Below are positions 2,261 to 12,002 of a stretch of DNA of 64,000 bases, in pieces. The DNA is from Oikopleura dioica (taxonomy: Eukaryota > Animalia > Chordata). The translations under genes and the position numbers were made by a program. Numbering within the stretch: position 1 is the stretch's first letter; each line of letters begins with the position of its first letter. The stretch is from positions 6,758,001 to 6,822,000 of the forward strand of contig OU015567.1 in assembly GCA_907165135.1 (NCBI GenBank). The letters are read 5' to 3'. The notes below the pieces were generated by a model. The model was not told the DNA's origin. It saw only the letters and a list, made by a program, of their open reading frames with translations, and did not search any database.

Positions 2261-2968
2261 ATGGAGAGGCTCTATCGGACAAATGGGAGAAAGTGCTTTA
2301 TTGGAATTTTCCCCAAAGATTTTTCAAGCGTTAGTGGAACTGGAGGACGACTAGAGAATTTGTTCAATAATAAGGATGATGTAAGATGTCTTTTTGAATG
2401 AAAAAGGAGACGTGTTTTTAAGGAAACCTTGCGTACTTCTTTCAAGTCTCAAGGATACTACACAAAACTCTCCCAGAAGAATCAGATCAAAACTCGCCGG
2501 GTTGTCGAATTCATCGAGCAAAACGCCGCGGAGTTCGAAACAGTTGGAGACGTTTCAAGAGTTGTCGTCTACATCTGTACTCATGGCTTCTCGTCCCAAT
2601 ACGGACAACATCTGTATTTCAGCGATGGGCATATTTTGATGGACCACCTGCTACGCCCTCTTTATGATTGCCCTGGTTTGGTGAATGTTCCACTTTTGGT
2701 CATTCTGCACTCCTGCCGCAAGTACAAGGAAGATTCAAGCATTGCTGAAGCAAGTTACAGATTTGCAGAAAATCGTCAAATCTGGCAAGATCGAGTTGCC
2801 CACTCAAAAGTCGATGTCGGTTTCGTCTTTTCAGCCGACGAGAATAAATATGCGCTTACTTCTTTCAATGGAACTTCTGATTTTGCAAGCAAGCTGGTTC
2901 ACGAATTCGAGAACAACGATGATATCTTCCGCGCTACGTCTTGTTTGGGGCTTCGGCACTCCTATCGG
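2261..2968 (+). CDS. Caspase-like domain 1 (5' half of a gene interrupted by the foldback element)
   Basis: ATG 2261, GT-AG intron 2381-2422; VYICTHGFS (catalytic His-Gly) and LVILHSCRK (catalytic Cys); p10-like VGFVFSADENKYALT...SDFASKL. Confidence 0.8.
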
Positions 2969-4061
2969 TAGGCTTACCGCGGTGTTTTCTATTTTTCAGG
3001 CTCTTTTGAAAAATCTCCCCATACTTTCAGAACATATGCATCAAGACAAGCCTTGAAAAACTGCACTTGCAGAATTTTCGATATGAGTCATCTTACCCCC
3101 TTTTTTGGGGGATTTTTAGCAAGAAAAAAAGCACTAGTTTGATTAGAAGCGGCTTTTGAGTGCGTGCTAGATCGATTTTGATAATTTGATGCCTACCATG
3201 TGAAAGATAAGCGCAAGATGCATCGATACATATGAAATTTATTATTGCGGAGTACTTCCTTCATATGATTCTAGAGCTCCAAAGTTGACGCAAGCAGCCA
3301 GATACGAAAATCCAATATTATCAACTTCTGATATAAGCATGCTATGATGATGTTTTATAGCTCAAATTGAAGCTTATAAATTACTGAACAAAATGGAGTG
3401 GTATTTTTGACCAGCCGGTTGTGCTTCCGGTTCGTCGCGGTTCATACCCGGAAATAGGTCAAAATGTAGAAATATGTATATCAAATGAATTAATTTTCAA
3501 CAGCGAATCTTTTGAACATATTCAGAAGTTCAACCGCCCGGTTATTATTGCGGTTCATGGTGGTTCATGGTGGTTCAAGCGCAGAAATGAACAAAATAGC
3601 AGCAATATGTATATCAAATTGAAACATAAATTAAGAACATTCATAAAATCATTTAATAAGCCCGAACCAACCGGTTGTTCTCCCGGTAAATGGCGGTTCC
3701 AAACGGTTCAAGCCGGTTCAAGCTAAAAACATGCTCAAAGTGGTTCAATATGGTTATCAAATGTATTCATTTACAATAGCAAAGCTTTCTAGCATATAAT
3801 GAAATTCAACCGCCCGGTTATTCTTGCGGTTCATGGTGGTTAATCGTGGTTCAAGCCCAGACATGAACAAAATAGCATCAATATGCATATCAAATTGAAT
3901 CTTGTATTAAGTACATTCGTCGAATCATTGAATAAGCCCAACCCAACCGGTAACTCTCGTGGAAAAAGAAGGTTTCTGACGGTTCAAGCCGGTTAAAGCC
4001 GAATATATGCTCAAAGTGGTTCAATATGTATATCGAATGAATGTTTATTAAAAAGCACGTA

Positions 4062-4288
4062 GTGTTTTGGGCCACCTTGGCGCTCGACTAAAAACAGCCA
4101 TATTTTTTGATTTTGTTTTTGTTTTCCTCAGTTAGCAATTTCACACTGCTCTCTCAACATAAAAGTATTCTTTTTCCTCTGTTCCTTTTCGTTCATATTT
4201 ACTTTATTATCCTGATGAAGTTTATCCAATAAACGAAAACGTTTGATACAAATCATATGATCTATTAACGAAGTCAACAAAAAAGATA
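4062..4288 (+). mobile_element. 227-bp insertion in the left foldback arm, probably a Penelope-like retroelement fragment
   Basis: Absent from the mirror arm; flanked by 13-bp direct repeat TAAAAAGCACGTA (4049-4061, 4289-4301); T-rich; contains a hammerhead motif. Confidence 0.6.
4208..4248 (+). ncRNA. Minimal type I hammerhead ribozyme motif
   Basis: TATC-CTGATGA-A-GTTTA-tccaa-TAAAC-GAAA-ACGT-TT-GATA: conserved core, 5-bp helix II, palindromic ACGT in place of helix III, 4-bp helix I. Confidence 0.55.
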
Positions 4289-4401
4289 TAAAAAGCACGT
4301 ATTTTGAAACTTTAACGAGATCCGGACGCGTGGTAAAACACTGAATATGTGCAAACCGCCCGGTTTTAATCGATTTTGTCTCTTTAAACGGGCAAACATA
4401 A

Positions 4402-6984
4402 GGGGAGGCAAGGCCCGTTTATACAATTCAGTCTGAGACGGGGCCAAGCCGACCCGAAGGAGAGGCCAGGCCCGTTTATACAATTCAGTCTGAGACGGGG
4501 CCAAGCCGACCCGAAGGGGAGGCCAGGCCCGTTCATACAATTCAGTCTGAACCGGGGCCAAGCCGACCCGAAGGGAGGCCAGGCCCGTTCGAACAATTCA
4601 GTCTGAGACGGGGCCAAGCCGACCCGAAGGGGAGGCGAGGCCCGTTCATACAATTCAGTCTGAGACGGGGCCAAGCCGACCCGAAGTGGAGGCCAGGCCC
4701 GTTCAAACAATTCAGTCTGAGACGGGGCCAAGCCGACCCGAAGGGGAGGCCAGGCCCGTTTATTCAATTCAGTCTGAGACGGGGCCAAGCCGACCCGAAG
4801 GGGAGGCCAGGTCTGTTTAAACGATTCAGTCTACGACGAGCCGAAGCCGACCCGAAGGGGAGACCAGGCCCGTTTATTCAATTCAGTCTGCGACGGGGCC
4901 AAGCCGACCCGAAGAGGAGGCAAGGCCCGTTTATTCAATTCAGTCTGCGACGGGGCCAAGCCGACCCGAAGGGGAGACCAGGCCCATTTATTCAATTCAG
5001 TCTGCGACGGGGCCAAGCCGACCCGAAGGGGAGGCCAGGTCCGTTTAAACGATTCAGTCTGCGACGAGCCGAAGCCGATTCGAAGGGGAGACCAGGCCCG
5101 TTCAAGCAATTCAGTCTGCGACGGGGCCAAGCCGACCCGAAGGGAGGCCAGGCCCGTTCATACAATTCAGTCTGAGACGGGGCCAAGCCGACCCGAAGGG
5201 AGGCCAGGCCCGTTCAAACAATTCAGTCTGAGACGGGGCCAAGCCGACCCGAAGGAGAGGCCAGGCCCGTTTATACAATTCAGTCTGAGACGGGGCCAAG
5301 CCGACCCGAAGGGGAGGCCAGGCCCGTTCATACAATTCAGTCTGAACCGGGGCCAAGCCGACCCGAAGGGAGGCCAGGCCCGTTCATACAATTCAGTCTG
5401 AACCGGGGCCAAGCCGACCCGAAGGGGAGGCCAGGCCCGTTCGAACAATTCAGTCTGAGACGGGGCCAAGCCGACCCGAAGGAGAGGCCAGGCCCGTTTA
5501 TACAATTCAGTCTGAGACGGGGCCAAGCCGACCCGAAGGGAGGCCAGGCCCGTTCATACAATTCAGTCTGAACCGGGGCCAAGCCGACCCGAAGGGAGGC
5601 CAGGCCCGTTCGAACAATTCAGTCTGAGACGGGGCCAAGCCGACCCGAAGGGAGACCAGGCCCGTTTATTCAATTCAGTCTGCGACGGAGCCAAGCCGAC
5701 CCGAAGAGGAGGCCAGGCCCGTTTATACAATTCAGTCTGAGACGGGGCCAAGCCGACCCCAAGGGGTGGCCAGGCCCATTCATACAATTCAGTCTGAGAT
5801 TGATGATACAATTCATCCGTCGCAGACTGAATCCTTTAAACGGACCTGGCCTCCCCTTCGGGTCGGCTTGAATAAGGGAGGCCAGGCCCGTTTATTCAAT
5901 TCAGTCTGAGACGGGGCCAAGCCGTCGCAGACTGAATTGAATAAACGGGCCTGGTCTCCCCTTCGGGTCGGCTTCGGCTCGTCGTAGACTGAATCGTTTA
6001 AACAGACCTGGCCTCCCCTTCGGGTCGGCTTGGCCCCGTCTCAGACTGAATTGAATAAACGGCCCTGGCCTCCCCTTCGGGTCGGCTTGGCCCCGTCTCA
6101 GACTGAATTGTATGAACGGGCCTTGCCTCCCCTTCGGGTCGGCTTGGCCCCGTCTCAGACTGAATTGTTTGAACGGGCCTGGTCTCCCTTCGGGTCGGCT
6201 TCGGCTCGTTGCAGACTGAATCGTTTAAACGGACCTGGCCTCCCCTTCGGGTCGGCTTGGCCCCTCTCAGACTGAATTGTTTGAACGGGCCTGGTCTCCC
6301 CTTCGGGTCGGCTTCGGCTCGTTGCAGACTGAATCGTTTAAACGGACCTGGCCTCCCCTTCGGGTCGGCTTGGCCCCGTCTCAGACTGAATTGAATAAAC
6401 GGGCCTGGCCTCCCTTCGGGTCGGCTTGGCCCCGTCTCAGACTGAATTGTTTGAACGGGCCTGGCCTCCACTTCGGGTCGGCTTGGCCCCGTCTCAGACT
6501 GAATTGTATGAACGGGCCTGGCCTCCCCTTCGGGTCGGCTTGGCCCCGTCTCAGACTGAATTGTATAAACGGGCCTGGCCTCCCCTTCGGGTCGGCTTGG
6601 CCCCGTCTCAGACTGAATTGTTTGAACGGGCCTGGTCTTCCCTTCGGGTCGGCTTCGGCTCGTTGCAGACTGAATCGTTTAAACGGACCTGGCCTCCCCT
6701 TCGGGTCGGCTTGGCCCCGTCTCAGACTGAATTGAATAAACGGGCCTGGCCTCCCCTTCGGGTCGGCTTGGCCCCGTCTCAGACTGAATTGTATGAACGG
6801 GCCTGGCCTCCCCTTCGGGTCGGCTTGGCCTCGTCTCAGACTGAATTGTATAAACGGGCCTGGCCTCCCCTTCGGGTCGGCTTGGCCCCGTCGCAGACTG
6901 AATTGAATAAATGGGCCTTGCCTCCCCTTCGGGTCGGCTTGGCCCCGTCTCAGACTGAATTGTATAAACGGGCCTTGCCTCCCC
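4402..6984. repeat. 57-bp GC-rich tandem satellite in two head-to-head arrays (~24 units forward, ~18-19 reverse)
   Basis: Unit GGGGAGGCCAGGCCCGTTTATACAATTCAGTCTGAGACGGGGCCAAGCCGACCCGAA; orientation switches at ~5800-5924; gives 19-aa periodic spurious ORFs. Confidence 0.95.
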
Positions 6985-8179
6985 TTATGTTTGCCCGTTT
7001 AAAGAGACAAAATCGATTAAAACCGGGCGGTTTGCACATATTCAGTGTTTTACCACGCGTCCGGATCTCGTTAAAGTTTCAAAATACGTGCTTTTTAATA
7101 AACATTCATTCGATATACATATTGAACCACTTTGAGCATATATTCGGCTTTAACCGGCTTGAACCGTCAGAAACCTTCTTTTTCCACGAGAGTTACCGGT
7201 TGGGTTGGGCTTATTCAATGATTCGACGAATGTACTTAATACAAGATTCAATTTGATATGCATATTGATGCTATTTTGTTCATGTCTGGGCTTGAACCAC
7301 GATTAACCACCATGAACCGCAAGAATAACCGGGCGGTTGAATTTCATTATATGCTAGAAAGCTTTGCTATTGTAAATGAATACATTTGATAACCATATTG
7401 AACCACTTTGAGCATGTTTTTAGCTTGAACCGGCTTGAACCGTTTGGAACCGCCATTTACCGGGAGAACAACCGGTTGGTTCGGGCTTATTAAATGATTT
7501 TATGAATGTTCTTAATTTATGTTTCAATTTGATATACATATTGCTGCTATTTTGTTCATTTCTGCGCTTGAACCACCATGAACCACCATGAACCGCAATA
7601 ATAACCGGGCGGTTGAACTTCTGAATATGTTCAAAAGATTCGCTGTTGAAAATTAATTCATTTGATATACATATTTCTACATTTTGACCTATTTCCGGGT
7701 ATGAACCGCGACGAACCGGAAGCACAACCGGCTGGTCAAAAAATACCACTCCATTTTGTTCAGTAATTTATAAGCTTCAATTTGAGCTATAAAACATCAT
7801 CATAGCATGCTTATATCAGAAGTTGATAATGTTGGATTTTCGTATCTGGCTGCTTGCGTCAACTTTGGAGCTCTAGAATCATATGAAGGAAGTACTCCGC
7901 AATAATAAATTTCATATGTATCGATGCATCTTGCGCTTATCTTTCACATGGTAGGCATCAAATTATCAAAATCGATCTAGCACGCACTCAAAAGCCGCTT
8001 CTAATCAAACTAGTGCTTTTTTTCTTGCTAAACATCCCCCAAAAAAGGGGGTAAGATGACTCATATCGAAAATTCTGCAAGTGCAGTTTTTCAAGGCTTG
8101 TCTTGATGCATATGTTCTGAAAGTATGGGGAGATTTTTCAAAAGAACCTTGAAAATCGAAAAACACCGCGGTAAGCCTA

Positions 8180-9183
8180 CCTATCGGGAAAGATTCAACG
8201 ACCCTGAAGAAGAGGGTGGCACGGATCAGTTCTATCCCCATTCAAAGAGGAAGAAAGCTGCAATTATAATCACATTGGGCGAGTTTGACAGAGAGAGAGA
8301 TTTCAAAAATGCTGATGTTGAAAGAGAAGGTAAAGCTTTTTTTGAAATTTCTTTGGGACCTATGATTTTTGTAGAAATGAAGAAGCTTGTAAAACAAATG
8401 GACTACGACGTCATTGCTTCCAACAAGACCTATATTACGCTTGAAAGTTGCCAGAAATTCATCCACAATTTGATCGAAAATAGCTTCCAGCACGGCCACG
8501 AATTCAATTCAATCATGCTCTATTTGAAAACACACGGGAGCTGGGGAAAGAAGGGCCAGATTGTCCATTTTTCGAACGATACGCAAATTCCGCTTCTTGA
8601 CTTGCTCCAGCCCTTCAACCAAGGACCTCTTAGAGGTAAAAAATAGAACTCCATCTAGTACTGCTAATCTTCTCTTTTCAGCAATTCCGAAAGCTATCTT
8701 CGTTGAAGCCTGCCAGGGAGAAACGAAAGAGACGGAGGGCATTAGATTAGGTCAGACGCACCTAGGAAGCAGCGAGCCTCGACATCATATGCTGAATACA
8801 ATTTTCTTCAAAGCAACAACAGAGAGAACTCTCTCTGTTACGCCAGAAGATCCTGAAGGACTCTCGCCTTTTACTGAAGGAACGGGGTCATTGAAATTTA
8901 CTTTTGGATATATAGAAATTTTTCATTTAAAAAACCTCGGCAAGCTCTGAAAGACATCGTCAACGAAGCACTTCTCAACGACGAAGACATCAACGCCTGG
9001 GACTTGTCGTGCAAACTCACGGAGAAAATGTCGTCAATAGAACCAGTCAGGCACCCGGCTCCAGAACGACTACATATTAATCCAGAATACGCTCTGAAAT
9101 TCGATAAATTCCTCCTGTGCCAAACGGATACGACGCTCACCAAAAACCTCAAAATCTTCAACAACACTCGATATCCTTATTAG
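8180..9183 (+). CDS. Caspase-like domain 2 (3' half of the interrupted gene)
   Basis: FYPHSKRKKAAIII, LYLKTHGSW (His), intron 8636-8681, IPKAIFVEACQG (Cys), SPFTE, GA-AG intron 8880-8944, ...TTLTKNLKIF...PY stop at 9181-9183. No ATG of its own after the insertion. Confidence 0.82.
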
Positions 9184-9340
9184 TGATTATTAGTTGATTT
9201 ACTGCTGCATAAAGTTCAATCTTCTTCAATCATTCTGTATTATTTTCTGTATACTTGAAAATTGCTAATTCCGATAAAAGTTCCAATAAATTTCATTCTC
9301 GATTCTTGATAACAACGATTTGAAAATAAGTCTAGTTAAG

Positions 9341-10454
9341 ATGGGAGACTACTACGACGTTCGCGGAATGAAGAGAATTCTAGCGATCTCGGTGGGCGAG
9401 TTCAACGCTCTTGACCCACTTCCGAACAGTCAAATTGATAAGGTAGGGGAAATGTGAGTGCTGAGGCTAAAACTGAATCCAGGAGCTCATCTTGAGGACG
9501 TTTTCCAGGCTCGGTTTTCGACCGACGCAGGAAAAAGAAAACACCTTGACAGCTTTGGACGCAACGAAGTTGATCGCCAAATTCTGTCAAAAGTTCGAGT
9601 CCGAAATGCCTATCAAGCCGATGAAATGCCTCGCTATCTACCTCAAGTCCCACGGCGGCATTGACAAGAAGGGAACAGTCGTGTACTTTAGGGATCAAAT
9701 GGTGCCGCTTTGGGATTTGTTGGACCCGATTCTGAAGCACCCGTGCTTAGAGGGAGTGCCCAAAATAGTCATCTTCGAAGCCTGCCGGTAATTAAGAGTG
9801 CGAATTCGTAACTCATGAAAAATAGAGGCCAGAATGCGCAATTCCGCAGAGCAGGGAACGATGGAGCGAAGAATGAAAACCCTAGAATGCCAGTTCACAG
9901 GAGAGTGGACACCATTCTTTTGCCGCCTCGCCAGAGGGAGAGTATGCCTACACCTGCGTCGATGAGAAAGCATCGCCATTTACGGAAACCTTCTGTGAAG
10001 CTCTTGATGAATGTCCAAGGTTAGAGGATTCAATATATTTTACATGGCAACAAGGCTCTTCTTTTTAGTCAAGACGTCTACGACCTCTCTCACACGATCG
10101 TAGAACGACTGAGACACAAACCAATTCTAATGACTGACGGAGACACTCCAATCCAGTACTTCATGGCGCCCTGCACTGAGACGAGTCTCACTAAACGACT
10201 ACGGTTGTACACTCCCAGGTTCAGTTCACGAGAAAAAGCAGTAATTTCAACTGATCGCTTTTAGTAAACAAAGCAATGGATACATGCCCGCTGCTGGTTT
10301 TCAAAGAGCCGCTTCAACTTCCAGTATGGACGATCAATTGTCTTCATTGATGGAACAAATCAAATATCTGCAAGGAGAACGCGAGAAACTGATCACTGAG
10401 AATCAGAATCTCCAACTTGATCTCAACAATCTACGGCGAAATACTTCAGCGTGA
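9341..10454 (+). CDS. Prodomain-less caspase-like protease 3 with C-terminal leucine zipper; one -1 frameshift in a T run at ~9917-9921
   Basis: MGDYYDVRGMKRILAIS, IYLKSHGG, VPKIVIFEACR|G, AASPEGEYAY, SPFTETF, TSLTKRLRL; intron 10219-10264 leads in frame to a heptad-Leu exon. Confidence 0.82.
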
Positions 10455-10780
10455 AGCCTTCAACTCTTACAATCGCTCTGTAAAGAATTTTTTGATAAAA
10501 AATATTGTGCCTTCTGTTCAACAGATTAAGTTAAAACTCTTTTACTGACCTTTCTACTTCAACTCACAATCATCGAGCAGATGCAGTAGATTCTCTGCAA
10601 CCTTATTATCTCTCTATCTCTTCGGATGCAATCCCATTCATTTACTGTCTTGATGGATGTCTGTATTATAGCCGATTTTATTCCGAAAGTTCCCATACTT
10701 CTTTATATTTCGACTTCCCACTTCGAAATTTGAGTTTGAATTGAATTAATTCAGCCCTATTAACCACTTTGCTTCCAGAA

Positions 10781-11731
10781 ATGGATGAGGAGAAGTACTG
10801 GTATGATACCGACACGTCTCAAGATGAAAGCATAAAGAGGCTGTTAGCAATCTCAATTGGCGATTTTCAGAACGAATGGCTACAAAGCCTGCCATCAGCA
10901 GTTATAGATAGGGTTCGTTTTTCGTTCACAGTGGAGTAATCATAGAATGGTTTTAGGAGCGAGTCGTTCGGACATTTTCAAAGCTCAATTTTCGCCCTAC
11001 GCAAGAACGCTTGTCAATGCTGACGAAGGCCGACGGGCGGAAGTTGATTCTCAAGTTCCGTGAGAAATTCAAAGACGGAATCGAGACTAAATGCTTGGTG
11101 ATTTATCTAAAATCTCATGGTGGACTTCATCCTCACAAAGGCACGATGATATATTTTTCGGATGAGGCAATGCCCCTTTGGGATTTGCTTGAGCCGCTCT
11201 TGCAATTGCCACAATTGCAGGGAGTGCCCAAAATGGTCATTTACGAGGCTTGCAGGTAAAACCAAATCCAACTTCCGGGCTCAAAAGTAAAATATTCAGA
11301 GGCGAAAATGCTCAATATATTACTGCAGGAGTCGCCACACCAACAACTCCAGTTGCATATGTCCATCGTCGAATCGATACTATTTTATTCGCGGCTTCAC
11401 CTGAAGCTGAAATGGCTGTCGCTGGTTATGAGAATGAGGTGTGTTCTCCTTTTACTGATGCTCTCTGCAAAACACTGTTGGAAAATAAAAGGAACGGGAT
11501 CGTCATCGTCTTTTCTCGACTAGTACTGTAAGTATGATATTCTGATCCCAATCAAGCCAGGATGTGTTTGATTTGGGCATAAAAGTCACCAATGACCTCC
11601 GAAAAGCGAATTTACCAGTGAGGGAGGCAGATGGCACGATCCACGCATGGGCACTGGCTCCTGTGATGGAGTCGTGTTTGACGAAACACCTCCGACTGAT
11701 GCATCCAAATGAGGAAGCAAAGTATGGCTGA
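10781..11731 (+). CDS. Prodomain-less caspase-like protease 4 (close paralogue of 3)
   Basis: IKRLLAISIGDF, IYLKSHGG, VPKMVIYEACR|G, ILFAASPE, SPFTDAL, ESCLTKHLRL; intron positions match protease 3. Confidence 0.85.
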
Positions 11732-12002
11732 GTTTCAGCTCCTTCGCTCTGAATTCCATCGCTCAAAAATTCAAATTGGCCATTCGAGCCCTCTTCCTGA
11801 TGCTCTCTTTTTCTACATGCAAACTTCATTCATTGAAAACTTCGTTCAAACTATTTCAATCATTCTTATCTTCTCCTCATTGTGTACAAAGAAATAATCT
11901 AAGTCTGTGATTTCTTTCCTCAAGCATCGACCCAAGCTCAAAACAGTTCCAAACTAAATTATTCCTATCCACGTTTATTTCCAATAAGAATCAAAAGAAG
12001 CC

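Follow-up and report, generated by a model that had tools for sequence, protein, structure and literature searches.

Does a caspase-like gene of the chordate Oikopleura dioica end in a leucine zipper and, if so, could the zipper pair protease molecules as prodomains do in other caspases? These questions are raised by the window (the whole 64-kb stretch of DNA analysed, contig OU015567.1 6758001-6822000), which carries four tandem caspase-like copies at positions 2400-11731. The third copy had been predicted from its sequence to acquire a zipper-encoding last exon by splicing. Initiator caspases dimerise through N-terminal death-fold prodomains and the induced-proximity mode of caspase activation has until now been linked to death-fold domains at the N-terminus and to adaptor platforms. 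A natural caspase-family enzyme that brings along a C-terminal zipper of its own would be a simple test case for pairing as a control of activity. The setting would be a chordate with a stripped-down cell-death toolkit.

Structure of the zipper-bearing gene

The exons of the window gene were searched individually and were joined only to check reading frames; the contiguous reference was the cDNA of an orthologue (L011, described below). The host genome searched comprised 64.3 Mb in 19 contigs. The features of caspase-like gene 3, the zipper-bearing copy, are as follows.

9341-9442, forward strand: exon 1, the translation of which begins with ATG
9443-9482, 9788-9825 and 10020-10068, forward strand: introns 1-3, GT-AG
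9483-9787, forward strand: exon 2, core of the large subunit, containing the catalytic His (SHG) and Cys (FEACR-G); Pfam Peptidase_C14 match above cut-off (E 4e-6)
9826-10019, forward strand: exon 3, covering the inter-subunit loop and the beginning of the small subunit; its two halves are in different frames as assembled
9918-9921, forward strand: site of a 1-nt frameshift in exon 3, a run of four T where relatives have one base more (DTIL-F, then AASPEGE)
10069-10218, forward strand: exon 4, the last caspase-fold exon (..MAPCTETSLTKRLRLY..), which aligns to the C-terminal end of caspase-7 chains
10219-10264, forward strand: intron 4, 46 nt, GT-AG, phase 2
10265-10346, forward strand: linker part of exon 5, with little conservation outside the Y-M-(P)-A-x-G motif of 10281-10298 (alignment A5)
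10347-10433, forward strand: leucine zipper of exon 5, in which Leu occupies five heptad d positions and Asn one of the core a positions
10452-10454, forward strand: TGA stop codon
10455-10624, forward strand: at least part of the 3' UTR, from metatranscriptome contigs, with a conserved 18-nt motif at 10544-10561

All introns of this gene are of the GT-AG type with lengths of 38-49 nt. Exon 4 ends at 10218 in phase 2 (..ACT CCC AG) and intron 4 extends from the GT at 10219-10220 to the AG at 10263-10264. The AG left by exon 4 and the T that opens exon 5 at 10265 form a serine codon, from which the open frame continues as KQSNGYMPAAG... for 62 more codons to the TGA, giving an exon of 63 codons. 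Hence, the 46-nt intron predicted to join the caspase exon in frame to the zipper was exact. If intron 4 is not spliced, the window frame meets a stop codon at 10262-10264. The neighbouring paralogue 4 (10781-11731) was said to lack the zipper and it does, stopping eight codons past the equivalent point.

The last exon encodes a leucine zipper

The leucine codons of the zipper begin at 10347, 10368, 10389, 10410 and 10431, that is, at every seventh residue, exactly as the original prediction had it. With these leucines at the d positions of the heptad, the a positions are occupied by Leu, Ile, Arg, Asn and Leu. Five heptad leucines arose by chance in only 0.028% of shuffles of the tail's own residues (P 2.8e-4) and no second five-heptad leucine run is found in any of the six frames of the 64-kb window. 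AlphaFold2 assigned low pLDDT and no secondary structure to residues 1-17 of the window tail and modelled residues 18-61 as a single helix with pLDDT values of 92-98 over most of its length. The tail therefore combines the properties expected of a leucine zipper or two-stranded coiled coil: leucine at d for at least four heptads, mostly hydrophobic a positions and a continuous helix. Pfam searches of the window gave only sub-threshold matches to coiled-coil families and no bZIP match at E values up to 1. A search of the genome with the zipper exon found neither a second copy nor an obviously complementary zipper, the sole other match having an E value of 0.235, and owing to this uniqueness the paralogues give no help in testing the splice.

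The zipper exon is joined to the caspase exons in an orthologous mRNA

Of three raw RNA runs of the species, none had a read that fell within 9200-11800, a result that says nothing on expression or splicing. An oligo-dT plankton metatranscriptome gave short contigs that match 10479-10624 with zero differences and cover the 3' UTR only. L011, a 1180-nt environmental contig from a sister Oikopleura lineage (lineage B), was recovered from JGI metagenomes by scanning for exon 4 as a pattern. The first 31 nt of L011 occur 53 times in the genome (51 exact copies and two with one mismatch; controls gave 0) and are missing from the genomic sequence ahead of the gene, which marks them as a spliced leader. 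The leader is joined 1 nt before the caspase ATG rather than at the zipper exon. In the window an AG (9339-9340) directly precedes the ATG at 9341 and is likely to be the spliced-leader acceptor of the window gene.

Alignment of L011 with the lineage-B genomic contig L016 gave five exon blocks with one mismatch overall, separated by four gaps of 42, 38, 41-42 and 42 nt, the last of which is the zipper intron. As all four introns have been removed and a spliced leader is present, L011 is a mature mRNA. It has a single ORF (33-968) encoding 312 residues, in which the caspase domain (residues 14-255) is followed by the linker and zipper (residues 262-312). Intron retention and a separate zipper transcript had been named as outcomes that would count against the original prediction; the orthologue gave neither, because L011 lacks the intron, has one ORF and carries its leader at the caspase ATG. 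Environmental contigs are able to settle splice questions of this kind in Oikopleura.

The junction and the zipper core are conserved in four lineages

An exhaustive protein search with exon 2 gave five proteins, all of which were ORF fragments of Oikopleura-like contigs or distant matches, and one of these more distant homologues (P0004, 225 residues) ends before the caspase/zipper junction. A protein search with the 312-residue orthologue gave no match within the length range searched. The contigs of the ORF fragments, L010 and L016, belong to lineage B. Their DNA is about 65-75% identical to that of the window, and the order of genes is shared as well, with copies 2, 3 and 4 followed by a Bromo_TP gene. 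Exon 2 of the window gene is 74% identical to that of the orthologue. Two further contigs were L018, which represents lineage C and is 78% identical to lineage B, and L017, a Tara Oceans contig 94% identical to 9627-11297 of the window with a tail nearly identical to that of the window and the C-terminus RRNT.

Intron 4 is found at the identical codon and phase in all four lineages, with lengths of 46 nt in the window, 45 nt in L017 (GTAAGT..TTCAG), 42 nt in L016 and 44 nt in L018 (GTGAGG..TTAAG). Without splicing, exon 5 is out of frame (the 46- and 44-nt introns) or a stop codon is met inside the intron (the 45- and 42-nt introns), whereas the spliced frame is open in four of four cases. Only splicing preserves the frame. 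Between the window and L017, intron DNA is 84% identical and the flanking exons are 95-98% identical. In comparisons of the window with lineage B, synonymous sites were saturated (pS 0.8-0.9; about 0.86 in the zipper core). All parts had a pN of about 0.2, and the value for the 31 aligned codons of the zipper (0.20) equalled that for the caspase exons.

The zipper core, EREKLI(T/L)ENQNLQLDL, is invariant in the four lineages apart from the T/L position. The window, with an extra heptad, has five leucines at d positions, lineage B has four and lineage C has three. Hence, the five heptads originally described are a property of the window lineage, whereas the sister lineages retain only three or four leucines at d. 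In those lineages Ala or Gln replaces the terminal d-position Leu and two a positions are polar. A chance ORF in a 3' UTR was considered as the origin of the zipper and was ruled out by the conservation, the pN/pS values and the heptad statistics.

In the orthologue the zipper exon is spliced to the caspase gene. By comparison of sequences the same splice probably occurs in the window genome, where 10265-10454 would be the genuine final coding exon of a lineage-specific caspase-family gene of Oikopleura. Such an exon would illustrate the gain of new coding sequence past the old stop position in a tandem gene family. The large sequence searches yielded relatives in Oikopleura-like contigs and none elsewhere, and the zipper-tailed caspase is so far restricted to the Oikopleura dioica species complex.

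A caspase domain with no prodomain and an altered substrate pocket

The L011 protein matched Pfam PF00656 (Peptidase_C14) with an E value of 1.2e-22 and 81.2 bits (cut-off 21.4) over residues 14-255, which align to positions 4-232 of the 233 in the profile, and hence the match spans the whole domain. Exon 2 of the window alone gave 27.1 bits. The window, L017, L011 and L018 all have LKSHGG and FEACRG, which align to the SHG and QACRG of caspase-7, so that both the catalytic His and the catalytic Cys are in place. The best matches of L011 among solved structures were caspase-7 chains (E 8e-8), the alignment ending at residue 261, at the end of the chain, and the ESM Atlas confirmed the caspase family. 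AlphaFold2 modelling of the full-length orthologue from a seven-row alignment gave a mean pLDDT of 49.9, which was too poor for a fold search. The genome that holds the window contains 12 Peptidase_C14 exon matches in about eight to nine loci.

As the caspase domain of L011 begins at residue 14, there is no N-terminal death-fold prodomain. A six-frame, exon-by-exon scan of the genome, which has low sensitivity, gave no match to CARD (PF00619) or DED (PF01335) at E values up to 0.1. The substrate pocket also departs from that of typical caspases. The active-site pentapeptide (9777-9785) is EACRG rather than QACRG, Glu having taken the place of Gln. Opposite the Arg of the caspase-7 SWR motif, the alignment has Val in the window (9940-9960) and Asn in lineage B. 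The set of residues that confers an Asp-specific S1 pocket (R179, Q283 and R341 of caspase-1, the first Arg being left out of the alignment) is not found. The altered pocket suggests a specificity other than for Asp, in which case the activation rules of Asp-specific caspases may not transfer to this protein.

The assembled copy has a frame break in exon 3

As assembled, the caspase ORF and the zipper of the window gene do not lie in one continuous frame. At the break, exon 3 reads GAC ACC ATT C TTTT GCC, and the motif across the site has 28 nt in the window and 29 nt in six related copies (L017, L016, L018 and all of the paralogue-4 copies), with the relatives and paralogue 4 reading DTI(L/F/M)FAASPE in one frame. 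The frames upstream and downstream of 9918 differ by one, the downstream frame being that which fits the donor at 10020, exon 4 and the zipper. Our reading of the window sequence found no alternative intron that restores the exon 3 frame without loss of a conserved strand. Owing to the break at 9918-9921, the assembled copy cannot make the fusion protein. The claim that the zipper forms the C-terminus of a caspase-like protease therefore stands for the L011 orthologue and for the junction in four lineages, but not for the window copy as it was assembled.

No second defect was seen in copy 3, which has canonical splice sites throughout and an open frame for about 147 codons past the break. L017, 94% identical to the window, has an intact frame, and downstream of the break it differs from the window by 12 synonymous and 0 non-synonymous changes over 82 caspase codons (7 and 0, respectively, in exon 4). 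This pattern indicates that the downstream codons of the frameshifted copy are still under purifying selection. Given the intact frame of L017 and the 12:0 ratio, either the assembly is in error at this homopolymer or the copy is a null allele of very recent origin, and the assembly should be flagged for a probable single-base error or null allele in copy 3. We consider an assembly error the probable explanation. A real, recently broken allele in the sequenced individual (a 1-nt deletion at 9918-9921) is the less probable of the two, though it deserves serious consideration, and would mean that no zipper protease is made from the window copy. The count of 28 nt against 29 nt in the six related copies is what a deletion would give, and loss of one copy should be tolerable in a family that is tandemly duplicated and lineage-specific. 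Against a broken allele are the homopolymeric nature of the site, the lack of any further defect and the synonymous character of all the downstream changes. A broken allele would be compatible with the other readings of the locus considered below.

Proposed role of the zipper

The catalytic dyad, the variable linker and the conserved C-terminal helix with its zipper core describe a caspase-fold protein that lacks a prodomain. The caspase domain runs to the caspase-7 end point; after it come a flexible linker, 20-27 residues long, and a helix, about 30-40 residues long, that contains the zipper core. In the model we propose, the zipper would form a parallel two-stranded coiled coil, and this coil would hold two protease domains together, thereby providing the proximity that CARD or DED prodomains on adaptor platforms give to initiator caspases. 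A parallel dimer is favoured by the polar residues Asn and Arg at core a positions and by the lack of like-charged g/e pairs. In caspase dimers the two C-termini leave the central antiparallel strand pair in opposite directions; by this geometry a linker of 20-27 residues should be long enough for both C-termini to meet in a parallel coil. When a complex of two window tails was predicted, the score was 0.24, below the mark of 0.32, which neither supports nor opposes binding. The coil may be weak or partner-dependent, given the three or four leucines at d and the two polar a positions of the sister lineages.

The Bcl-2 family has been lost in Oikopleura (PMC8998228). Given this loss, the failure to find CARD or DED domains and the lack of a prodomain, a built-in zipper is a plausible substitute for a platform, and by analogy it seems reasonable that the zipper might stand in for a death-fold prodomain as a dimerisation or adaptor module. 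Taken as a whole, the model of a last-exon zipper that pairs a prodomain-less protease through a parallel coiled coil, with the assembled copy being an error or a recent null, is in our judgement evenly balanced between right and wrong. More tentative is the broader proposal that Oikopleura replaced the adaptor-platform route by a C-terminal zipper that dimerises a prodomain-less caspase-fold protease with a non-Asp (probably basic-residue) specificity. If this holds, the protein would be a "forced-dimer" caspase that evolved naturally.

Instead of pairing the protease with itself, the zipper could anchor it to a different coiled-coil protein, whether adaptor, inhibitor, scaffold or cytoskeletal partner, or determine where in the cell it is placed. 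A short core, Arg and Asn at two of the four a positions and Ala or Gln for the terminal d leucines of the sister lineages are typical of zippers that select partners, and the conserved Y-M-(P)-A-x-G in an otherwise free linker hints at a second contact or a processing site. We nevertheless think docking rather unlikely, in that the genome search found no second or obviously complementary zipper and the g/e positions do not forbid homodimers. It is highly improbable that the zipper ORF is a small gene in its own right, lying downstream in an operon, with trans-splicing at 10265 and translation from the conserved Met at 10284: the Met of Y-M-(P)-A is invariant in the four lineages and Oikopleura does use spliced-leader trans-splicing (the 53 genomic copies of the leader), but L011 contradicts this reading in that its leader is at the caspase ATG and the mRNA is uninterrupted through the zipper, the spliced frame is kept despite introns of 46, 45, 42 and 44 nt, and in the window an out-of-frame ATG at 10276 lies ahead of the Met.

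Comparison with known caspases and zippers

The Oikopleura protein with its proposed zipper pairing shares features with several known systems and differs from each. Executioner caspases 3 and 7 (MEROPS C14A) have the same SHG His and ACRG Cys, both subunit regions and the same domain end. Unlike them, the Oikopleura protein has no N-peptide or prodomain, has Glu for the Gln of QACRG and has the S1 Arg replaced, and it extends 50-63 residues of linker plus zipper past the end of caspase-7. The MALT1 paracaspase and the metacaspases (C14B) have in common with it the caspase fold, a non-Asp (acidic) S1 pocket and extra C-terminal parts; however, its sequence similarity is to the C14A caspases. 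The C-terminal part of MALT1 is an Ig-like domain, not a coiled coil.

The zipper itself resembles those of bZIP proteins and GCN4 in having Leu at every d position over four to five heptads and, in a central a position, a buried Asn. Unlike a bZIP protein, the Oikopleura protein has no basic region, as the residues that precede its zipper (..AASTSSMDDQLSS) are not basic. Engineered fusions in which the GCN4 zipper replaces the CARD of caspase-9 force dimerisation, the zipper of these proteins being N-terminal. Such fusions also place a zipper on a caspase domain that lacks its prodomain, whereas the Oikopleura zipper is natural, C-terminal and conserved across divergent lineages.

The closest parallel in proposed logic is with the initiator caspases (caspase-8, caspase-9, CED-3 and Dronc). 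Their activation proceeds through proximity-induced homodimerisation (PMC5123071), in which a non-catalytic module pairs the protease domains. The module of the initiator caspases is an N-terminal CARD or DED that needs an adaptor platform, whereas that of the Oikopleura protein is a C-terminal coil that could act without a platform. The original prediction did not recognise this architecture among described caspases, and in the literature searched we found no described caspase with a C-terminal leucine zipper.

Other features of the locus

Many of the genomic 31-mers that match the spliced leader stand in close head-to-head pairs. The Y-M-(P)-A-x-G motif (10281-10298) is the sole part of the linker conserved in the four lineages and could be a processing or docking site. 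In L017 a 5-nt insertion (818-822, corresponding to window 10442) brings the stop codon two codons earlier, to give ..RRNT in place of ..RRNTSA; this earlier stop argues that the extreme C-terminus past the zipper is unconstrained.

In paralogue 4, the window segment 11492-11556 has to be read in one of two ways: with a GA-AG intron of 65 nt, the product being ..ENKSQDVFDL.., or with a GT-AG intron of 29 nt together with a 12-residue insertion. The paralogue 4 genes of lineages B and C read ..KSQDVFDL.. with no intron at the matching site, and the 65-nt GA-AG option coincides in position and phase with intron 3 of copy 3. This segment is probably a non-canonical intron retained in one lineage and lost in the others.

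The 3' UTR of the lineage-B cDNA is at least 209 nt long. A stretch of 18 nt, ACTGACCTTTCTACTTCA, is identical (18/18) between 10544-10561 of the window and 1741-1758 of the lineage-B contig L010 despite the saturation of synonymous sites, and a shortened form is found in lineage C. The conservation of this motif suggests that it may be a regulatory or RNA-binding site.
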